Positions 1,323 through 64,000 of a stretch of 64,000 nt of DNA are shown in pieces. A program made the position numbers and the translations under genes. Below the pieces are notes generated by a model. That model searched no databases and was not told the DNA's origin. It saw nothing but the letters and a program-made list of their open reading frames with translations. The DNA is taken from positions 7,306,722-7,370,721 of the forward strand of contig OZ037766.1 in assembly GCA_964035545.1 (NCBI GenBank), in the 5' to 3' direction. Position 1 is the stretch's first letter. Each line of letters opens with the position of its first letter. Origin of the DNA: Bugula neritina (lineage: Eukaryota; Animalia; Bryozoa).

Positions 1323-4300
1323 TTACTGTGTTATCTGTGAGTGGTTGCTCATTGGTATCGCCATTGTCACTGAACTGCTGCTATCGATGCTTGACATCAG
1401 TCCGTTGGTGGTGGGAAGGGAAGTCCTGGCTTCGGATGAGTTTATTGGTCCCCCAGAGCTAAGTGCTGCTGAAGAAGTCATCAAACTGTTAGATGTTGAG
1501 GACATTGTCAGTAGATTTTGTGTAGTTAGTGTGTTGATTGTTGTAGTTGGTGTGTTGGCTGTTGTAGTTGGTGTGTTGTCTGTTGTAGTTGGTGTGTTGG
1601 CTGTTGTAGTTGGTGTGTTGATTGTTGTAGTTGGTGTGTTGTCTGTTGTAGTTGGTGTGTTGGCTGTTGTAGTTGGTGTGTTGATTGTAGTAGTTGGTAT
1701 GTTGGCTGTTGTAGTTGATGTGTTGACTGTTGTAGTTGGTGTGTTGTCTGTTGTAGTTGTTGTGCCACTTGTTGTTTCTGATATATTAGCATCTGCAAGT
1801 GTTGAGTTTGTTGCTGCTGCCATTGTTGGTTGACGTTGTTTTGAAGTTGGTAAGAATGGTGCAAGTGTGATATTAAAGTTCTCTTCTACTGGGGTCATGC
1901 TGCTTGCTGCCACAATGCTGTTTTTAGGCTGTGATAAACTAGTGACAGATAACACTGGCCCAGCAGTTACACTGCTTGTGACTAAGTCAGCTGGGTCGGT
2001 TTGTCGTGTGGTCTGGTTGTCTGCACTTGGTGCAGAAGTGTTTGCATGTTGTGTCTGATTATACTCCAGTGAGAAACCCTCTAATGTCATTGTGGAGGTC
2101 TCTGAAACACTACTGTTAGTGTTGACTAGTGGTATAGGAGCTGCAGTTGTTGTGTTGAGTAGGCTATGCGGCACGCCCGTAGATTGAGGAGTAGATGTTT
2201 GTGTTTTTGTATCCGAGCTGCTATTAGTAGACGTTGTAGATAAATTGTGATCCTCATCAGCTGTAGATATGTTTACTGTCTCAGACGTGATGTTTTTATC
2301 TGGAGCATTAGCAGTTGTCATCACAATCCCGTTGGTGGAGTTACTAGGAACACCTGGATGTATGCTGATGTGATGAGTCACTGTTGTAGTGGAGTGTTTT
2401 GAGTACTCGATGGTAGATGGGGTCGTGTGCTGCGCTAAGCCCGAGTCTGTACCCGTAGAGGTCAACTCAGATTCTCTACTCTCAGATGTATATGCTGGCA
2501 TTGTTGTCTGTGGTAATGTTATGTTCTGTTGGTCTGCTAATGTAGACTCACTGGGTAACAGTGATGGATTTTGTTGAGTGACTGTAGTCGTCACCTCTGT
2601 GAGATGATAACTTCGAAATGTTGAAGAAAGAGTTGCAGTCACTGCGCTTGTGTTAACTATAGAGCTCGTAGCATTGTACATAGGAGTTACGATGCCTTGT
2701 ATTCCATTTGAATAGCTTTTAAAGCCGCCGTAGAAATAAAGAAGTGCACCAACTATTCCGAGTACTACAGCGACTGAGATTATTGTAACAATGCAGGCTA
2801 TTCCACATTTCCTTATAGAAAGTGCGTGACTCAGTTTGGTAGTATCGTCGCAGCTGGTGATGTCATAATCACGGACTTTCACCAGACCAGCCTCGATGTC
2901 ATAACTAGCAGGACTGGAACTGCTGCTACATTCATCATCAGGCTGTACTTTAGACTGAAATGTACTGCTAAGTAACTTATGCCATTCTCTGATTCGTTTT
3001 TCTCTTTCGGTTATCTCGTGCTCTTGTATTGATAGTCGCTGCTTGATTTTGGCAGCGTTTTTCGAAACTTCCTCTTCTAGTAGATGTATGTGAGTCAGAT
3101 CAGCTTCGTCCTCGGCCACCACCCAGTAGCTGGTAGGTCGGTGCTGAGAGCTAGATACTAGTTTAGAGTAGTAGTTATCTATTACATCCTTGTATGTGGT
3201 TAGGGTTGTGTAAGTAGAAATGGCTAACGTTTGATATTGGGAACTGTTTTTAGTATTCTCATTTCTTTCCAATGTTGAATGACTGCCTTCAGTGTTAGCA
3301 ATAAAGTCAGTTCTTGGCTCTATTCCTTTCAGAAGAGATCTAATTCGACAAGCTATGCATCCTGAAATATAAAATCAAAATATATAAATCATGTGACCTG
3401 GTTATAGCCTTGCATTTGCATATGATGTTCTATAGTCTATACTCTATACTATGGAGTAGTGATTTCATTGACACAAACAGAGTTATGAAATCTACTGCCA
3501 TGCCATGTACACAATACACAACACATCCCAACTAGACAGTTCATAGGTGAAATGTGTAGGCTTTGGATGGCTATGGAAGGGGTGATATCATAAAATATTA
3601 GGAAAAAATTATGGGATTTCAGTTTAATGTTTACCAATATTTGTTTTCTATAAAAGTTGAATTGGTTTGTGTTCAGGAATGTAGCCGACTGTATTACACA
3701 GAGAGATAGCAGGGGTAACCTACAGGATATTTTCTACAGTAATACTCTGTTACCTGGAAACTACTCTAGCTAGTATGTCATACAAATATCGCCAGTTACA
3801 TCCCATATCTATAGCTAGAGAGTTTTACCTTACACTAGTTCTATGAATTCTAGGATACATTTTGTTTTAATTAAATAAATGATAACTTTAATTGATTTAG
3901 TTTTTTAGTGTCTCACCACTATTAACGCCTATGTCGAATAAGCTAAATCAACCTACCAATCTGTTTCATAGATTTTTCCACTTCATGCATTTGTTCATCT
4001 TCAACTGGGAGAGAAGACGGTACGCCTGTGGTGTATGTATTCAAGTCTGACACACTCCTTTCTAAACTCTCTATCTCACTCTCTATGTTGGCTGATTGTC
4101 CCAGGTAGTTGTTGATAGATTGCTTAAGGATTCTAGAGTTTCGGTTATCTAATGGGATCTTGGCGCTCCGTCTCCTCTCTGTGTTTGTGTTGACTAGAAA
4201 CTCAAGCTCTGGGTAGGAGTCCCTGACCATCATGGCAATCTCTACAAGATAGTGATATGAGCTAAGAGCAGTTACACATACAGTTCAGAATGACGAGTCA

Positions 4301-46742: not shown

Positions 46743-49700
46743 TGTCGCAGACAGAGAAAAGAGCAAAGAGTAGAAGTTATAAGTTATAGTGTGGTTTCAA
46801 GTGAGAAGATAAGTGTCTGAATAACAGAAAATTCTGGGTTTATATACCAGTCTAAAAAGTTAGCTACTTTGTAGTAGCTAGAATCATTGTAGAAAAAGCG
46901 TAATGTAGCTAACATAGCTATGCTAATACAAGTAGAGCTATAATGAAATAGGAAAAGCTCTCCCAGCTCATGTAATGTCCCAACAGAAAGAAACCAGTTT
47001 CCAACATGAAGTTTTAAAACTACACTTTTTCTATTTTACCTTTTCCTGTTTCTGTTTTGAAAATTTCCTGTATAAGTTAAAAGCTTCTCTATTTTGCTAT
47101 CTAAAAGCAACAACTAACAATCTTGTATAAGACTCTGCTTTCCAACAAACCACACATTTTTAGAGTTTTGTTCAAGTTTTGTAACTAACTTGGTTTATCC
47201 TTGAATGTTAATATTTGATGTTTTTCACCCACAGCTTGAATCATGTGATAATCTAAATATTTTTTGTAAAAAAGTAGCTTTTTATGCAGGGTTGAAATAG
47301 ATGTTAAATACCAGTTTGAGAAAAATATCCGTTATGGCTATTTTTGTTTAAACTGAGAACACATGTTAAATACTAAGTTAAATTATCATACTTTTCAACT
47401 TCCACAAAGAAATCTGTGATCTTTTTAAAGGTGTAGATATTGGCCAGAGACTACACAATGTATGCTCTTTCTGGGGTTCCACGTGGGTTTTATATTGGTT
47501 GGTTCTCTTTGTCATCGGTTCATCAACTAATGGATTTACCTCAACACTTTCACGCTGACTGTTTAGGTTAGCAGCAGCGACATCTCTTTAGACTTCAGTC
47601 CTTCATTTTTCTCCTTGTTTAGATATATTTGCTAAGCTTTGGAAAAATTGATCGTACCTAAACATAATGCATTAGGATAAAAATAATAGTGAATAACTAA
47701 GCCTTGTTATTGGCTTGATGAAAACCATCAGTGCAATGAGTAATTGGAATTTCCCTGGAATACCCTTTACTCTTAGCATTTTCTTATGGTGGTATTAAAA
47801 AGTTTTCCAAAGTACTTTTTCGGCCTACGATTAAACCCCTCCGTGTGATAGGGTGATTTGTCTTCCAACATTAACCCACCTTGCTGTGGAAAGTTACAAT
47901 TAGCACTAATGATTTTCATATTATATACAAATAATGTATATAGGTTGCTATCCAGGTAGTCTGGGGGAGAACTTTAAGGAATGCCCTAGGGCCTGGCCTT
48001 TAGTCCCCTCGTCTTTATTGTAATTTGGCAAGGCGCCAACAAATATGGCCACGGTTACACTTGACTCTCCCTACTCTGATATGATATATTGAAAGCCAAC
48101 CTACTACGCTATCATATAACATGCTAAAAATATGGTTTGGATTTTTGGAAAACTGATATAGTTGTGTTCTGCATAAGCTGCAGTCCAATGGCTTTGCTTC
48201 CTGAATTGTAAGCTGCTATTAGGAGGGGGAAAAGTATTTCCACGGTCATTGCTGTATCTTTAATAGGTTGGCTTGTTTGGAAATTGTCTCTAAAGTACTT
48301 GAAAATTAGTCTAGAGAACAAAAACAAACTAATTTCAGTCATTGCGGTAGGATTTTTAAAAATCAAAAATATTTAAGATGTTTTTATATCAATAAACAAT
48401 GATGCATGTAGTAACTCTCTCTAATGAGTGATGATTACTGTCATTAGAATGTGGGTAAACTGTAAATTGGTTACCTAATTCTAAAATGTAGTTCCTTTGC
48501 AATTGATGCATTTTGTTCTGGACAATAAATATTAGATAGTTAGTTATTAGGTTTATTAGTCACCTGCCCAGTACCTAGTCATGGTCTTCAGCTGATAAAA
48601 CTTGAAGTAATTTAAAATATTATTATATTTTGTTTTTCTACAAACAGAAACGAGGAAAATGTAGCATCTGTATTGCACACCTCAGGAACTACTAGTATTG
48701 GAATGTATGGTGACTAATGATTACTAACAGAGTAAGGCCTGTGACTCAAAATATGAGGATGCAGTTTACAGAAAACATTACTCACTATCTTTATAGGTAG
48801 CTGCTTACTGTACTGCTTAAAAATATTGAATGATTATGAAAAATTCGGCTCTAGTATTCATTAAAAAGTAAATAATGAATGATACTGTCCATGCCTTTTT
48901 GAGACTGCCATGATATAAAGTTGAATGTTCCAAGGGGCTTTTGTTAAAGTGAGAAATTGGTTTGTTATGTGCTGCTGCTGAAAACTCTGTTTTCTTAGTC
49001 TAAGTGCTGACTGAAACTAATTTAACTTGGCTAGGGAGATAACATTACAGCTATGCCGTTTAGTAATTTCTTTATGATTTTGGTATTCCCTGTAGATGTT
49101 AATATAGTTCCTAAAATTATAAACAAAAAGATGTGTTAATTACTGATCAAATCAAATTTAAAGTAACTGGCTTATGCAGGAAAAAGTTTGTGTCTTTCTC
49201 CTTTAATCAGCTACTGGTGTTAAAAGCAAGTTTGCATAGCAATATGGCTTCATGTAATAGACTGTTGTGAAAATGAATAATATAACGAAATAATTAAATG
49301 GTGTAATACATTTGAAGTAGACAGTGGGATGTTGGAAAGGGACAGGAAAGTATCGAACCTGACTAGAGATATGATGATTAATGATATTCTTCACTACCTG
49401 AGCAGAGAGGTGTGAACTGGTCGACGTGTTACGGATTCAGGAAACGGTAAGGTATAACATTTTGACGGAAACAATTTCCTTTTGCTAAATGTTATAAGTA
49501 TTCCTCAATTTTGCGACCAATGAAAATTAATTAGATATGCAAGGATATTTATCACGAACTCTTTCTGTATTCTCAACTATTTTTCAGTTCCTTATCTTAC
49601 AGTACCTGCAAACTGGTTTATAAAAATAAGTTAATTTGAGTTTAAATGTAAAGCTTGTTTTTAAGATTTCATATAATAGTATTTTTGAATATATTGTATT

Positions 49701-56600: not shown

Positions 56601-58529
56601 TATTTTAGCTAAAATCTGAATACAATAAACAAATAGGTTATTCATATTTATTTCAAGTAATTTCTATGTGTATTTCAGTTTTGATTCACTATGTATTTTC
56701 TAATTGCTGCAACTAGCAATATCAAGCAATAAGAGTAAAATTTCTGATTATTTCCTTATTGTGTCCAGTGAAATCATCTTTACTATAAGGACATACGTGA
56801 GTCAGTAGCTATAACTTACTTGTCAACTCTTCTTCACATTAACACATCTTAAACCAATTGCAATGAGTGTTACACCATAGAATGTAATGTAAAGAATATG
56901 TTACACGTATGAATATTTATGCAGACATTTTGTAGTATGTGAGCATCTTATGTGGCGGCAGTTTGTGGTGCAAGCTTCCTCAGTACAATGGGTTTGGATA
57001 TGATTGCATAAAAGAGCATGAGAAGGTGTGGGTGCAACTTGCTTGTCTAAAGGGCTCTGTCATTATAGGAAAGGTGCCCATGCTGCAACTATGCCTTATG
57101 CTTTGCCTTTTTAAAGCTAAAGTGGAAATTGACTGCTAACATAACCCTCAGCAGATACTTTGTTGGGAGATTTTCCTGTCGAACTTTATGGTGGTATGAC
57201 TGCTACAGTCATGCTAGGTTGTCTAGCAGAGGCACCCACTGTCACATGATAGCATGGTGGAATACTCATGGTAGACCCTCAACTTTTCCATTACCACTAA
57301 TAAGTAAAGAGTTTCCCCACAAGTAGAAGTAACCCGCGCATGGATGTATATGAATTATGGATTACTCCGAGGTACTGTGCTATAAGGAGACGCGTAGTAG
57401 ATGGAATTTCCCTTTTATTATGTCGTGTGTTTTGAACTGTGTTATTGATTTTCATAGAGACATATTTCACAAGTGTTGCTCGAGTGACTGACAAAGAAGG
57501 CTACGAATAATATGAACATGTCAAATCTTGCCCTGCACTATTTTTGTGTTGTTTTCTGAAAGACCTCTTCTGTCTCCACTAGAGAAAAGTCTGTGTCTGA
57601 AAATCTATGACAATTTCACAGCTTTACATCATAGTTATGATGAAGTGTCTCAGCAACAGTAATTTACCAAAGCATCAACCCCCCAGTATCTTTCTGAGTC
57701 TAGTGTAATAATGGTGAAATTTTGCTATAGCTGTTTAATCTTAAAATTGCAAGCTCGCTAAAACAGCACTGGTGTATTGTAATATGATATCTATTCAAAA
57801 TCTGCATTTGGGATTACAATAAAAAAATTGCCAGGAATTCACCGTTAGTAAACGGGGCAGCAAGGATTCAAACCTCTGTTGGTGCGACTTTTGAGGAACC
57901 AATTTTAAAAAGGTTGCTGCATTACAGGTTATGAACAGACGGGAACTTCTTATCTCGATGTACTCTAAATTTGTAGTTAGACAAATATAGTTTTGCTTGA
58001 ACTATGGAGTACTCAGTATTGAAATAATTGTCTCTCAAAGTTGATAACTATAAAAAAGTTGTCAGCTTTGTGATGTAAATGCTACCGTTGCAAAGAGTTT
58101 GTATATTAAGTGTTGATAAGCTCATATAAATGGAAAAACATTTTTATCATTATAGATATATTTTATATATTTGACTAGCTACTCTCAGTTTTCTTTCAGC
58201 ACATCGCTGAGGCACGCGTCAGCGTTATAATATAATTGTAGCCAAGAATTATCTTTAAAAGTGACTGCAGGCATTGAGTGAAATACTTATCAACAATCCA
58301 TCACATGTCCATCACATGTTCCTGCATATAAATCCATTAATCACCTTTCACTTTTTGGCCTGCATCAATTTAAAATTGGTGGGTGCTTTAGCTGTAGGCA
58401 TTTTGCTCTGACAAATCATTGACTGATGCTCTTTATCTATGGCAATGCATCCTCCCCCTACATCCACTAACAAAAGTTTATCTTTTCATTGTAGTATAGG
58501 ACAATAAAAAAGTTTTAGAAAAATTGCAT

Positions 58530-58667
58530 CTGATTAGTCATAATAAGTTATCCAATAAGCTACACAAGGAAATGCTTTTGATTGGCTGAAATTGGGAAAG
58601 TTTATAGCTAGTTTTTCAGTTGATTTTTAGCTAGTGCTAACTCAGAGGTTACCAGGGTGAGTATAAA
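58530..58667 (+). promoter_or_regulatory. Proximal promoter of secreted protein A: CCAAT boxes, kB-like site, TATA
   Basis: CCAAT at ~58552, ATTGG at ~58581, GGGAAAGTTT at 58594-58603, TATAAA at 58662, about 90 nt upstream of the ATG. Confidence 0.45.
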
Positions 58668-58755
58668 TATCATAATAGTTTCTTGAGTTAAATCAAATAA
58701 CATTTTGACACTGAGAGTTTAGGTTGTGTGTTTTGTTTAGTGTTTAAAATAAATA

Positions 58756-59646
58756 ATGGGTGCGATTTTCAATGTATTCTTGCTTGCAGCCTGTGTGCTA
58801 TACATGGTAGCAGCAAATCCTATAGCACCTAATAGCAACATTAGCTTTAACATAACGGAATGTAAGAATCAAGGGGCAGAACACTACGAGTTACAGAGAC
58901 AATACGATGAGCTAGACGCTCAGCCAGTTTCTGCTTTCACTGCTATTGACATATACACGGCAACAAGGTTTAATTATACACATATTTCAGGCTGTAGCCC
59001 TCTGGATGTGCCAACGTGAGTACTTATTTCAAATATAATAATATTTTTTATCAACTTCTGTTTCCACGAATTTACACATTTATGAAATAACACTTATGTG
59101 GTATTGATAGATAACCAGCCTTCTAGCCTGGGCACTTTCACATTCTCAATGAATCTAATTTATCTGTGAATTACCGCATGCTTTGGGTAAAATATAATTC
59201 ATTGATTAAAACTCAGCTTATATTTTCTAAGAATCAAATCGAAAGTTTTAACTGTCATCTGGGTGTAGCTCTTATAGCAGTATTTTTATAACAATATTAC
59301 ACTTGAGTACTACCATACATTAATGTATTTGTTATTACCCTCCTAATCTCATTGCCTAGACAAGGTCTAGCCTATAGTAAGTAACACACACTATTTATTG
59401 TATTTTAGGCGAACTATCACATATGAAGACAACGAAGGGTTGATGTACGAGCAAACTGTTGAGACGAGGGTGCTCTGTGGTGAATGCCCCAGGACGCCTA
59501 ACGGCATCAAACAGATAGCAAGGCGACATATAAGTCTTGCTACTCGATTATTGGCTGATCATTGTGAGTTTGTGGAATCTAAATGGATCTGGAGGTACCA
59601 GAAGGTAGCTTTTGAAGTAGCCAGTTACACTTGTGAATCTGTCTAA
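58756..59646 (+). CDS. Secreted Cys-rich protein A, 165 aa (divergent IL-17/cystine-knot-cytokine-like); exons 58756-59015, 59409-59646
   Basis: Signal peptide MGAIFNVFLLAACVLYMVAA. The phase-2 intron (CCAAC|GTGAGT ... TTTTAG|G) joins two ORFs in frame. Six Cys in the mature chain, including CGEC and C-terminal YTC; several N-glycosylation sequons. The gene structure is secure; the family assignment is tentative. Confidence 0.8.
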
Positions 59647-59719
59647 AGGCTCAACTACGTTCAGTCTCTCTAAAAGAAATCTCACTTTCATCCTTCCAAT
59701 ACACACTCTAGTATACATA

Positions 59720-59946
59720 TACTTATTTAAAAGGTTTAAGTTATATCAATTGACAATTACTTCTGGTGAATTTACTTTTTACTATTTATTGTATTTTATT
59801 TGACAGATTATTTGATAGCCTTTGGTGGCATTAATATCAAATATCTAGTGCTTTTTTGTCTAATATTACTTATCAAAATTTTGTAAAATAATTTTTTTAT
59901 TATACTATTATTCATATTGATTCTAGGTCTAATTTATTTATTTATT
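59720..59946 (+). promoter_or_regulatory. AU-rich elements in 3' UTR of secreted protein A
   Basis: TTATTTAA at 59723, ATTTA at 59770 and 59784, and overlapping AATTTATTTATTTATT at 59931-59946. The AT-rich background lowers significance. Confidence 0.45.
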
Positions 59947-61531
59947 ACTGACAATTTTCATTTTCTGCATGCACGCTATGCATTGCTGATTTGTCATTTT
60001 GCGCAATATTACAATCATACTCTTTACAGTCGTTAATAGATTTTCCATATTTTTATGATTTTAATACAAAATGTTATCGAGTTAAGGCCTACACATTAGA
60101 CAACCTATATAACATGTTTTGCATACTTTTTACTTATCCTTGAAATATATATATATATTCTACAAACTTAAAGAAGCTATATTCTCATGATTTCTTGATT
60201 GTGAACAGTGTGCTAACTTTGAGGGACAGAAAGTAAGAGTGTACTTGAACTTGGGCCCCCTCCCCCCTGTGTAGCCTGGGAGAAGTTAAAGAGTTGCGCT
60301 TTTCCCTCATGATATATTTAGGCTTTGTTACTGCAGCCAATACTATTGAAGTTGGGTGGTTATTTGAGGAAAAGTCAAATGATATGATAGGCTGGTGCAA
60401 ATAACTAGACTAATGTTCAGTGGAAATTATTTCTTCCCCAGCATTTTATGGATATTGTATACCAAAGGCAGTGTATTTTCCTAGTAGTTTATGATGTATG
60501 CTCCATTTTCTGTATGTAATATCTGAAGTTTCCTCTAAATTCCAAAAGGCATTTGCCATGTAATGCTGATGTAATATATCCTAGCTCATGCAGCTATAAG
60601 AGTATGGGCCTGCAGTATAACCAGATGGTTGTAATCTGAATGCATGTTATGCAAATAAAACAGATTCTGTAAAACAAAAAATTCTAGTCAAGTTGAACCT
60701 TGGGAGTTATGCTATTGATAGATAAGGCTGAATTTGATCTGCTAGCTAATGTTAAACCTACCCATAATGTAACTCCCCCAGCCTAGCTACGTGCAGATTA
60801 GGAAAGAGGGCTATGTCGATGCCTGTTTTGAAAGATTATCATAGCAGCTCAAATTAACAAATAATATATTATATATCCAGGTATTGGAAATGCGTGAAAG
60901 TTCTCTATTCTTACGTTATATATTGGCTTACTTGCAATGTTTTTTTTGCGGATTTGTCTCCCCATAGTTGACTTGGGCTCATAAAAATGACTATCGTAAC
61001 CAAAAGTTATACCCAGATCTTAGAACACAGAATTAGAGACTTTATCAACTGATGCCCAAAAGTTTCAAATTGTCAGTCCCTTGGTTAGTTATCTCTTGTA
61101 AGTGCATTTTGTAACAGCATTTTAATTAAACTTACAAATTGTTAATTACTCAATATTAATGATTGAAATTGTATGGTTTAGGTACAAAATTAAATTCTGA
61201 AACAGCCAAAATAATAAAGAATGTCTCAGTATTCTTTAAAATATAGTATTTTAATCTCTTTATCTTTTGCATGGTTTGTAACTTTATGGGTAAGATTTGG
61301 TCTTTAAACACCAATACTGTTCTTTAAGTCAATTTGCCACTTTCAAAGTAATATTATGAAGTAGTATAATATATTTATGCCACCATCTTTCTGTGTGCTG
61401 GAGCGGCTGTAGAGAACATGACTGCTAAAAGGCTAATCACAGTGGAGGTCAATGAGCAGCTCACTGCACAAATAGTATCAACGCGGCTTTGCAGTGCCAT
61501 TGAAGCGAATCAAACAATGAGAAATGTTAGT

Positions 61532-61691
61532 GGGCGGAGCTTAGTTTTATAGAAAGACCTGACGCATCCTTGCAGTCAAGCGACTGGTAACAGCAGGAGT
61601 GACAGTTAGTCAGGGAACTGGGTAATTACCGAAAGACCAACAGTGCCTTTAGCTGTATGGATTTCCCACCGGAAATGGTTGCCTATATAAA
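61532..61691 (+). promoter_or_regulatory. Proximal promoter of secreted protein B: GC box, CRE-like, kB sites, TATA
   Basis: GGGCGGAGC at 61532, TGACGCA at 61560, GGGTAATTACC at 61620-61630, TGGATTTCCC (=GGGAAATCCA) at 61658-61667, TATATAAA at 61684. Confidence 0.55.
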
Positions 61692-61964
61692 GGTAAACAG
61701 GTCCGTATTGCACTCAAATATTTTAGAGACAGAGCTGGAAGACATACTACCTGTGTGCTCTTTCATTATACATGTCATTTTTGTGTATCTGCTACAGACA
61801 CACTTACTGAAAAGATTTGTACCTTTAGCTCAATCAGTTGGTTCTGCTGTGATAGACTCTAGTTATCTTGAAGTAAACTTTGTTAGCAAACGTAAACACT
61901 AACCCTTTATACTAACTCTTTAAGAGAAAAGTCAAATTTGCTGCTTATTCTGAAAACAGTATCA

Positions 61965-62751
61965 ATGAATCTCTTAACTTTCTTAGTTGTATTGACAATT
62001 GTATCAATATGGCAACTCAGTAGTTGCATGTCAATTGGTAATCACAGACGGCATAGTGGCAGTCACTCACCTACACAGTTACCGTACTTCACTCCTCCTT
62101 TCTACGACAATGTCACGTACTGCTACAGTTCCGGGGCTACTCATCCACTTAGTGAACGGCGGAGGCAATGCATTGCAAGTTCTTTGACTATACAGAGAGC
62201 GGAAACAGGTCTGGAAGCTGAGCTACTGAATTCTACAACTCTACATATTAACCATAACATTTTCTGCAACGATAAAAGTATGCAAACACCATACGAGAGC
62301 CCTACGTAAGTCAAATTCACTATGTTGTACACCTAAATGATAAATCAACTGTAATGTCTTGTCCCTTTTAACTCATGGTTTTATTAGTATATAGCTGCAA
62401 TCTAGTAATAAAAATAGAAGGAAGCATTATTGGTGCTATTAATTAAAAAATCTTATAAAATGCTCAACTGTTTGTTCTAATAGACAATTAGAGATATGGG
62501 AAGCGAAGATACCAGGGACTTTAGTACCGGAGTATGTGAGTAACGTATCTCAATGCGGTAACTTTACCTGTCCAGCGTGTGCTGGATGTTCTAAGACCGT
62601 TCCAACTGCAGAGGCAGAAGAGAAAATACACATACAGGTTTCTGGTTGCTCACACATGAACAGTACTGACTACACATCTCCTCTAGAATTTGCATATAAA
62701 TATGTAGTCGTCAAAACTAACACACGATTCCCGTGTAAATATGTAGTGTAA
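61965..62751 (+). CDS. Secreted Cys-rich protein B, 202 aa, paralogue of protein A (divergent IL-17/cystine-knot-cytokine-like); exons 61965-62305, 62484-62751
   Basis: Signal peptide MNLLTFLVVLTIVSIWQLSSC. The phase-2 intron (CCTAC|GTAAGT ... AATAG|A) joins in frame. Nine Cys in the mature chain (SQCGNFTCPACAGC ... SGC ... FPC). AATAAA at 63202. Confidence 0.8.
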
Positions 62752-64000
62752 CTTATCGCATACTATTTTATTATTTTAAATCAGTAGTCATTATAAAAGT
62801 TAATATATTTAGCTATTTATTAGCTGCCTGCTCTTTATTTTGTTACATCATATAACTCTGATACCGGTCCAGCCTTTTGCATTTCATTTCTCAGGATCTT
62901 TCAATTATTCCTATTTGAATGTCTTGAAGCCAATTGTAGAATTTGTGAGTATCAACTCTATTTTTATACATTTTTATTTTATCAATTCAAAATAGGTATT
63001 CTATTTTTACTTTTACTCAAAAAACCAACTGTAGCTACTATTGATATAAAACTTATTTGATACCATTTTTTAATAGCAATTTCATATCTATTTTGTATAA
63101 AATGTGTAATTTGTATAAATTCATTCATCAACTCTGTTTTTATACGATTTATGCTATGTTAAAAGTCTGCTTGGTATTTTATACTCAGCCTATAGTTTAT
63201 CAATAAATCTATAGCTGGTTAAAAATGACTTTTGTTTAGTAGCTATTTGTGTTAGCTACTGAAAATGTTGATTATCCAGTGAGTGCCATTGAATTTTATA
63301 AAAAGGAAGTATAAATTTCGCAAGCCAATGAGCATTCACTCGACCTCTAATAGGTTTATACAAAATAATCAATGTATACTAGTGGCATTTCGCAATTAAA
63401 AGGTAAATAAAAAGGATTGGTAGCTGGTGAATAACACAACTCAATGTATAACTGCAAAACCTTTCCATGTCAGAAGCCACCTGGAACTTGAAGATGTTTC
63501 CAAATAACTCGTCATGCATGTTTTGGTGTTGGTCTCTTTTTCTTACATTAGCAAATGGAAGCTTTTGGAAATATCTTAATGCTTATGATAGCTACATTTC
63601 ATTTACTTGAATAGCCTGTGGTAGTCATGTATATACCACTTGCACAATATGCATTATAGCAATATTATCAAAGACTGCAAAGGCTATAATTATTTGTAGA
63701 ACTATAGATAAAGAATGCGCAAAACTGTTTGCGGCTGCCTACTTTTTTTCCAATTGTCATATTATTATATTATTACCTTCTTTAATTCCAAGTGGGGTAC
63801 AAGTATTTTAAATATATCAAATTGAAATCCCATCCAGGAGATAATTGCCCAAAGCATTGCTTACCATAAACAGAGTCACATGAAGCAGTAGGAAAGACAG
63901 AAACCTATTTGCCTCAGCTTGTGTTGCTGCATAAATTCCATCTTTCCATTTAGAAAGAAACTAAATGGATGACTGTGTGTACAAATACAAATGATTTATA

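Follow-up and report, generated by a model that had tools for sequence, protein, structure and literature searches.

Invertebrate interleukin-17 (IL-17) cytokines are highly diverged and mostly recognised by their domain and cysteine pattern alone; they carry a CPW motif versus the SPW of chordates, are commonly encoded by two exons and lie in tandem arrays (PMC4517768, PMC8353272). The sea-urchin protein SpIL17-4 is an IL-17 too diverged for BLAST that was detected via its transcription, and the SpIL17 subfamilies 3 and 9 lack the two C-terminal cysteines of the knot (PMC5457136). No bryozoan was seen among the 10 invertebrate genomes of one IL-17 survey (PMC4517768), and neither "bryozoa" nor "Bugula" occurs in the full text of another (PMC8353272). 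Here we analyzed a stretch of 64,000 nucleotides (nt) from the bryozoan Bugula neritina (assembly GCA_964035545.1, contig OZ037766.1, positions 7,306,722 to 7,370,721 of the forward strand; hereafter the window), in which two neighboring genes, A and B, had been proposed from the letters alone to encode highly diverged, cysteine-rich secreted paralogues, candidates for a novel cytokine family related to IL-17 and cystine-knot proteins. We find that both genes are real, that each is transcribed on its own and present in a single copy, and that they are limited to the Bugula neritina lineage; we put at about even the chance that the two proteins belong, in extremely diverged form, to the IL-17 branch of cystine-knot cytokines.

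Gene architecture and possible kinship with IL-17

Reading of window positions 58500-63000 and translation of the exons confirmed two same-strand (+), two-exon gene models. Gene A comprises coding exons at 58756-59015 and 59409-59646 (stop codon 59644-59646), separated by an intron at 59016-59408 (GTGAGT..TTTTAG), and gene B comprises coding exons at 61965-62305 and 62484-62751 (stop codon 62749-62751), separated by an intron at 62306-62483 (GTAAGT..AATAG). The predicted products are 165 and 202 amino acids (aa) long, respectively. As the original prediction held, both introns are of phase 2, each of the GT..AG type and each splitting a Thr codon between its second and third bases, and both N-termini are signal-peptide-like in translation, with a hydrophobic segment followed by small residues. 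The same pair is found in a sibling assembly (GCA_010799875.2, locus L011), where an annotated 165-aa gene lies 2.3 kb 5' of a 211-aa gene; exon 1 of A corresponds to L011:6805-7064, and the N-terminal helix of the B orthologue is a confident part of its AlphaFold2 (AF2) model.

In gene A, exon 1 encodes the signal peptide, Cys35 and, within a C-S-P-L motif, Cys80, while exon 2 encodes four cysteines (exon positions 23, 26, 52 and 75) and ends in SYTC plus three residues. In gene B, three or four cysteines are encoded by exon 1, along with the signal peptide, and six by exon 2 (exon positions 24, 29, 32, 35, 55 and 84), which ends in RFPC plus four residues. The terminal motifs thus hold a single cysteine each, YTC in A and FPC in B, as had been described; the odd cysteine count ascribed to B hinges on whether or not Cys21 is cleaved off with the signal peptide. 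We take the products to be small, secreted and fast-evolving proteins, probably N-glycosylated and disulfide-bonded.

The same genome also encodes canonical IL-17s. A Pfam IL17 scan recovered two identical copies in inverted orientation on contig 3 (33.8 bits), designated IL17-1, whose last exons lie about 11 kb apart at G000 C3:13708992-13709207 and C3:13719958-13720173; a protein search with the contig 3 exon led to a further locus, IL17-2 (G000 C1:27448493-27448711), which is 46% identical. As a positive control, the contig 3 sequence alone scored 35.1 bits against a Pfam IL17 cut-off of 24. The last exons of IL17-1 and IL17-2 follow a phase-2 intron within the Trp codon of C-P-W, encode 78 and 80 aa, place the first cysteine after 22 residues in both cases, and leave 6 and 8 residues, respectively, after the last cysteine. 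The corresponding exons of A and B follow a phase-2 intron within a Thr codon, encode 79 and 89 aa, place the first cysteine after 23 and 24 residues, and leave 3 and 4 residues after the last. When six last-exon peptides were aligned with MAFFT, four cysteines and one Gly were invariant and collinear.

The original prediction had treated the absence of the first cysteine of the terminal CxC as a departure from IL-17. Yet both IL17-1 and IL17-2 end in RSYTC, likewise without that cysteine, and gene A ends in ASYTC; because these Pfam-positive Bugula sequences have YTC as well, the missing CxC is a trait of the lineage and no bar to membership. In addition, exon 2 of A scored 7.5 bits against a hidden Markov model (HMM) of the two bryozoan IL-17s, a score reached by 12-14 of 3000 shuffled sequences (p ~0.004), and its comparison with IL17-1 gave p ~0.006. 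On the IL-17 reading, A would stand nearer to the recognizable bryozoan IL-17s, and B would have arisen either by an old tandem duplication or by diverging separately within the family.

For B, evidence of another kind came from a language-model comparison. All ten of the ten nearest Atlas clusters of its orthologue carry NGF, IL17, Spaetzle or Noggin (best score 0.92, with 190 of 256 features shared), a neighborhood that, on the calibration supplied with the tool, is suggestive of this group of families and short of proof. As the clusters are a mixture of NGF, Spaetzle, Noggin and IL17, they would also fit an origin of A and B, and of B especially, in a different cystine-knot branch, as pro-proteins of the NGF/neurotrophin, Spaetzle, PTTH/trunk or Noggin type that are cut at dibasic sites. 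The basic clusters HRRH and ERRRQ in the N-terminal half of B would be candidate pro-protein convertase sites for such processing, and exon 2 of B does not specifically resemble the bryozoan IL-17s. However, no match to Pfam NGF (PF00243), Spaetzle (PF16077) or Noggin (PF05806) was obtained at E <= 10, and the last-exon architecture fits the IL-17s of this genome specifically, in a comparison for which the NGF, Spaetzle and Noggin families were not searched in the genome. We consider an origin in one of these other branches improbable.

A number of results weigh against the IL-17 assignment, together with the comparisons between A and B described below. Exon 2 of A was not significantly similar to IL17-2 (p ~0.24), exon 2 of B showed no similarity to the bryozoan IL-17s, and the N-terminal halves of A and B showed none to exons 1 and 2 of the canonical genes. 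BLASTP and hhalign comparisons of A or B with the bryozoan IL-17s were not significant, and neither gene was recovered by the genome-wide IL-17 family and profile searches. The Pfam search for IL17, Spaetzle, NGF and Noggin, a check of the kind proposed at the outset for IL17, Spaetzle, Noggin and the cystine-knot clan, yielded no match at E <= 10 with any of the four exon pieces or with the complete B orthologue. A PDB sequence search with B found no match, and nor did PDB profile searches, which lack power here because a control profile of the canonical bryozoan IL-17s also misses the vertebrate IL-17 chains. Shuffled exons match the cysteine placement with a chance of about 0.01 each, a figure obtained, like the intron statistics, with windows chosen post hoc. 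In the Atlas comparison, a score of 0.9 was reached by 4-10% of shuffled proteins, and exon 2 of A alone gave no usable match. AF2 models were unusable both for the B orthologue alone (mean predicted local distance difference test score, pLDDT, of 39) and for exon 2 of A with a six-row alignment (pLDDT of 43); fold prediction failed because of too few homologues. The low-confidence model of A exon 2 contains two long strands (33-47 and 58-74), which would fit an IL-17 hairpin and are not evidence for one, and a Foldseek search with this model returned nothing meaningful.

The main rival reading is that A and B are secreted proteins of restricted taxonomic range that lack a cystine-knot fold and any kinship with IL-17, and perhaps with each other. 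Their resemblances in cysteine spacing, terminal cysteine and intron phase would then be coincidental, as may occur among small cysteine-containing secreted proteins. Several searches agree with such an origin. Further copies, which the original prediction had suggested looking for, were not found for any of the four exons in the 216-Mb genome by per-exon searches and two profiles, each exon being unique. An exhaustive phmmer search with mature B against 1.84 billion protein representatives recovered only B itself and two cysteine-repeat matches that we judged spurious; word searches with exon 2 of A, and with the canonical bryozoan IL-17 exon, found no relatives, and two metagenome scans were blank. 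The lack of Pfam and PDB matches and the disordered structure models point the same way. On the other hand, coincidence would have to account for the intron position and phase, the last-exon length, the four collinear cysteines and the SYTC ending that are common to the IL-17s of this genome, for the similarity of A to the IL-17 profile, for language-model neighbors of B that all fall into one group of related cytokine families, and for a tandem, same-strand arrangement typical of IL-17 arrays (PMC4517768, PMC5457136). We regard restricted proteins of this kind as a serious possibility, if somewhat short of an even chance. The proposed IL-17/cystine-knot relationship is retained in part, and we still regard it as the best single explanation: three independent but weak lines, namely the shared last-exon architecture, the profile score of A and the Atlas neighbors of B, speak for it, and the lack of a profile or PDB match and of an alignment between A and B speaks against it.

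If A and B are derived from IL-17, their knots would differ from the usual one. The pattern C-x(n)-C ... C-x-C is not present in either protein; C-x2-C in A and C-x4-C in B lie near the start of the exon, and one cysteine lies at the terminus. As for the CPW/SPW motif, G-C-S-P-L lies in A 28 residues ahead of the first knot-position cysteine and B has only E-S-P-T, compared with C-P-W at 23 residues in the Bugula IL-17s. We entertain, tentatively and as an idea somewhat on the unlikely side, a bryozoan-restricted lineage that arose from IL-17 and re-wired its knot, with one terminal cysteine kept, a core cysteine lost in A and a C-x2-C-x2-C cluster gained in B. On the IL-17 reading as a whole, we propose that, once the signal peptide is cleaved from A and B, the roughly 80 last-exon residues would fold into the long β-hairpins of an IL-17-like core, held by disulfides among the four collinear cysteines (the first, a second 3-7 residues on, the penultimate and the single terminal one). 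The proteins would dimerize and then act on a SEFIR-type IL-17 receptor; a SEFIR domain is encoded at one or more loci of this genome.

We also considered the stretch IWEAK at the start of B exon 2, which is identical to a stretch of human IL-17A; it lies about 11 residues too early in the alignment anchored on intron and cysteines, and was discarded as a coincidence. Separately, among the IL-17 loci read (including C3:13718458-13721673 and, on contig 1, C1:27446993-27450211), the last intron of the contig 3 gene contains a long (CT)n microsatellite.

Relationship between genes A and B

The original prediction regarded A and B as paralogues with shared motifs. In the window, the first exons indeed align with a BLASTP E value of 0.008 over 20 aa around the NITEC../NVTYC.. 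motif, and shuffling gave p values of 0.003-0.008. The same shuffling test with the orthologous pair of the sibling assembly gave p values of 0.4-0.7, and the Asn-Ile-Thr of A, an N-glycosylation motif, is Ser-Ile-Lys in the sibling genome. As the similarity is not significant in the sibling orthologues and the glycosylation motif of A is absent there, the motif is not a conserved family signature. Beyond exon 1, the second exons showed no similarity (BLASTP E value of 12, p > 0.25 in shuffles), hhalign of two-sequence profiles of A and B gave a probability below 1%, and no DNA similarity was found between the two loci.

The lack of a significant alignment between A and B had been named in the original prediction among the results that would refute it, and no such alignment was obtained. 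What the genes do share is their architecture, that is, the same strand, two exons, a phase-2 intron interrupting a Thr codon, a first last-exon cysteine 23 (A) or 24 (B) residues from the intron and a terminal cysteine 3 or 4 residues from the end; on these features we base a weak case for paralogy. Similarity that is not robust between A and B, and loci unrelated at the DNA level, are also what unrelated, lineage-restricted proteins would show.

Transcription, splicing and evolution of the locus

To follow transcription, Logan contigs of four runs, each from a different study, were aligned to the region at a threshold of 90%; their identity to the window is about 90%. The exons of B are joined exactly at 62305/62484 in contigs of three runs (X1, X2 and X5, from three studies), in which the intron is removed and the codon split by the junction is GTA, versus ACA in the window. 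One such spliced contig (run X1) starts at 61739, placing at least 61739-61964 (+) in the 5' untranslated region (UTR) of B, and the Logan transcript contig L012 contains an uninterrupted open reading frame (ORF) of B.

For gene A, no spliced contig was found among the four runs, and exon 1 is uncovered at this threshold. A 453-nt contig with the intron retained spans exactly 58986-59438 in three of the runs, with a shorter version (59036-59438) in the fourth. At both ends, the 453-nt contig reaches exactly 30 nt beyond the predicted splice site, and contigs of A exon 2 begin exactly at 59409. Given contigs assembled from 31-letter words, such breaks suggest that spliced and unspliced forms of A coexist. 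The junction 59015/59409 also agrees with the gene model that NCBI gives for A in the sibling assembly. Of the two predicted junctions, that of B has thus been seen directly in RNA, and that of A is supported indirectly, by the contig breaks and the gene model. The 3' UTR of A extends at least over 59647-60169 (+), as one contig of run X5 covers 59415 to 60169.

The intron of A (59016-59408) is retained in contigs of all four runs, at a depth comparable to that of exonic contigs. We attribute these contigs to RNA rather than contaminating DNA, because the intron of B has no such coverage. An in-frame TGA directly follows the donor of A, and the intron-retained form would terminate there; retention may be regulated or may reflect slow splicing. 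In run X2, a low-depth contig aligning at window 61953-61990 fuses 37 letters to position 61990, in the signal-peptide coding region of B. These letters match the TATA-box region of the B promoter as read in the sibling assembly, and the contig may be chimeric or reflect a structural variant.

Putative promoter elements precede both genes on the + strand. A TATA-box-like element of A (TATAAATA, 58662-58669) lies about 90 nt 5' of the ATG, and one of B lies at 61684-61692; both are kept in L011. About 15 nt 5' of the latter, a κB-like candidate site (GGATTTCCC, 61657-61668) differs by one base from its counterpart in the sibling genome (GGATTTTCC). The exact κB consensus occurs in the window at 47746 and 57403, a count not above chance. 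Just 5' of the TATA-like element of A, collinearity with the sibling locus is lost (window 58254-58649 versus L011 6592-6704), and the roughly 400 nt there, which include CCAAT-like boxes, have no aligned counterpart in L011.

The window can be aligned collinearly with L011 throughout, at about 88% identity, which indicates that the window stems from a sibling lineage within the B. neritina complex. A protein query with the exon-1 frame of B returned one protein, the 211-aa hypothetical protein EB796_023449 of Bugula neritina (P0001), with 83% identity. The window has TTG at 61938, nine codons 5' of the start of B, where the sibling lineage (L011/P0001) has ATG; the annotated N-terminus of B therefore differs between them (211 versus 202 aa).

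Across a nucleotide divergence of about 12%, both frames stay open, without insertions or deletions, and every cysteine is kept. Exons are conserved no better than introns. Ratios of nonsynonymous to synonymous substitution rates (dN/dS), calculated by the Nei-Gojobori method from per-exon codon alignments of the window with L011 and summed per gene, were 0.63 for A (1.1 for exon 1, 0.29 for exon 2) and 0.46 for B (0.52 for exon 2). Both genes are fast-evolving, under weak to moderate constraint. Exon conservation at intron level and dN/dS values of 0.46-0.63 also count in favor of restricted proteins with no IL-17 ancestry.

Two further frames of the window lie on the minus strand. An intronless ORF of 207 aa at 12727-13350 matches the RNA 2'-phosphotransferase Tpt1/KptA family (Pfam PF01885, 195 bits). 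At 1323-3272, an open frame of 649 aa that is rich in Thr, Ser and Pro, with tandem TTT-x-NTP repeats and a hydrophobic segment, has a mucin-like look and no Pfam match.

Comparison with known cytokines

Were A and B to be IL-17 derivatives, the bryozoan IL-17 repertoire would exceed what domain scans show, and cytokines missed by sequence searches could be traced through their gene architecture. The CxC pair, usually held to be defining, would be something that a whole lineage can do without, in line with the Pfam-positive Bugula IL-17s that already lack it. A re-wired knot would represent a new disulfide topology for a ligand of the IL-17 receptor, or else the proteins would be ligands of another receptor. 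Without IL-17 ancestry, A and B would be ordinary lineage-restricted secreted proteins. Either outcome is unsurprising for fast-evolving secreted ligands of invertebrates.

Among described systems, the NGF, Spaetzle, PTTH/trunk and Noggin ligands resemble A and B in being small, secreted and cysteine-containing, and include the nearest language-model neighbors of the B orthologue; they differ in that A and B have no match to their HMMs. With the Bugula IL-17s, A and B share a signal peptide, a last exon of 78-89 aa, a phase-2 intron followed by the first cysteine after 22-24 residues, and a single terminal cysteine 3-8 residues from the C-terminus, set in SYTC in the case of A. In contrast to these proteins, A and B lack a Pfam IL17 match and have two exons instead of three, and their intron interrupts a Thr codon, after VPT or SPT, and not the Trp codon of CPW; moreover, A lacks the third cysteine of the canonical last exon, and B has an additional C-x2-C-x2-C cluster and a longer last loop. 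Like invertebrate IL-17s more widely, A and B form a same-strand tandem and are fast-evolving, and the C-S-P-L of A lies near the position of the IL-17 C-P-W. The sea-urchin proteins offer a further parallel. While SpIL17-4 and the SpIL17 subfamilies 3 and 9 retain a recognizable, if partial, IL17 domain, unlike A and B, they provide a precedent both for an IL-17 that is invisible to BLAST and for the absence of C-terminal knot cysteines.

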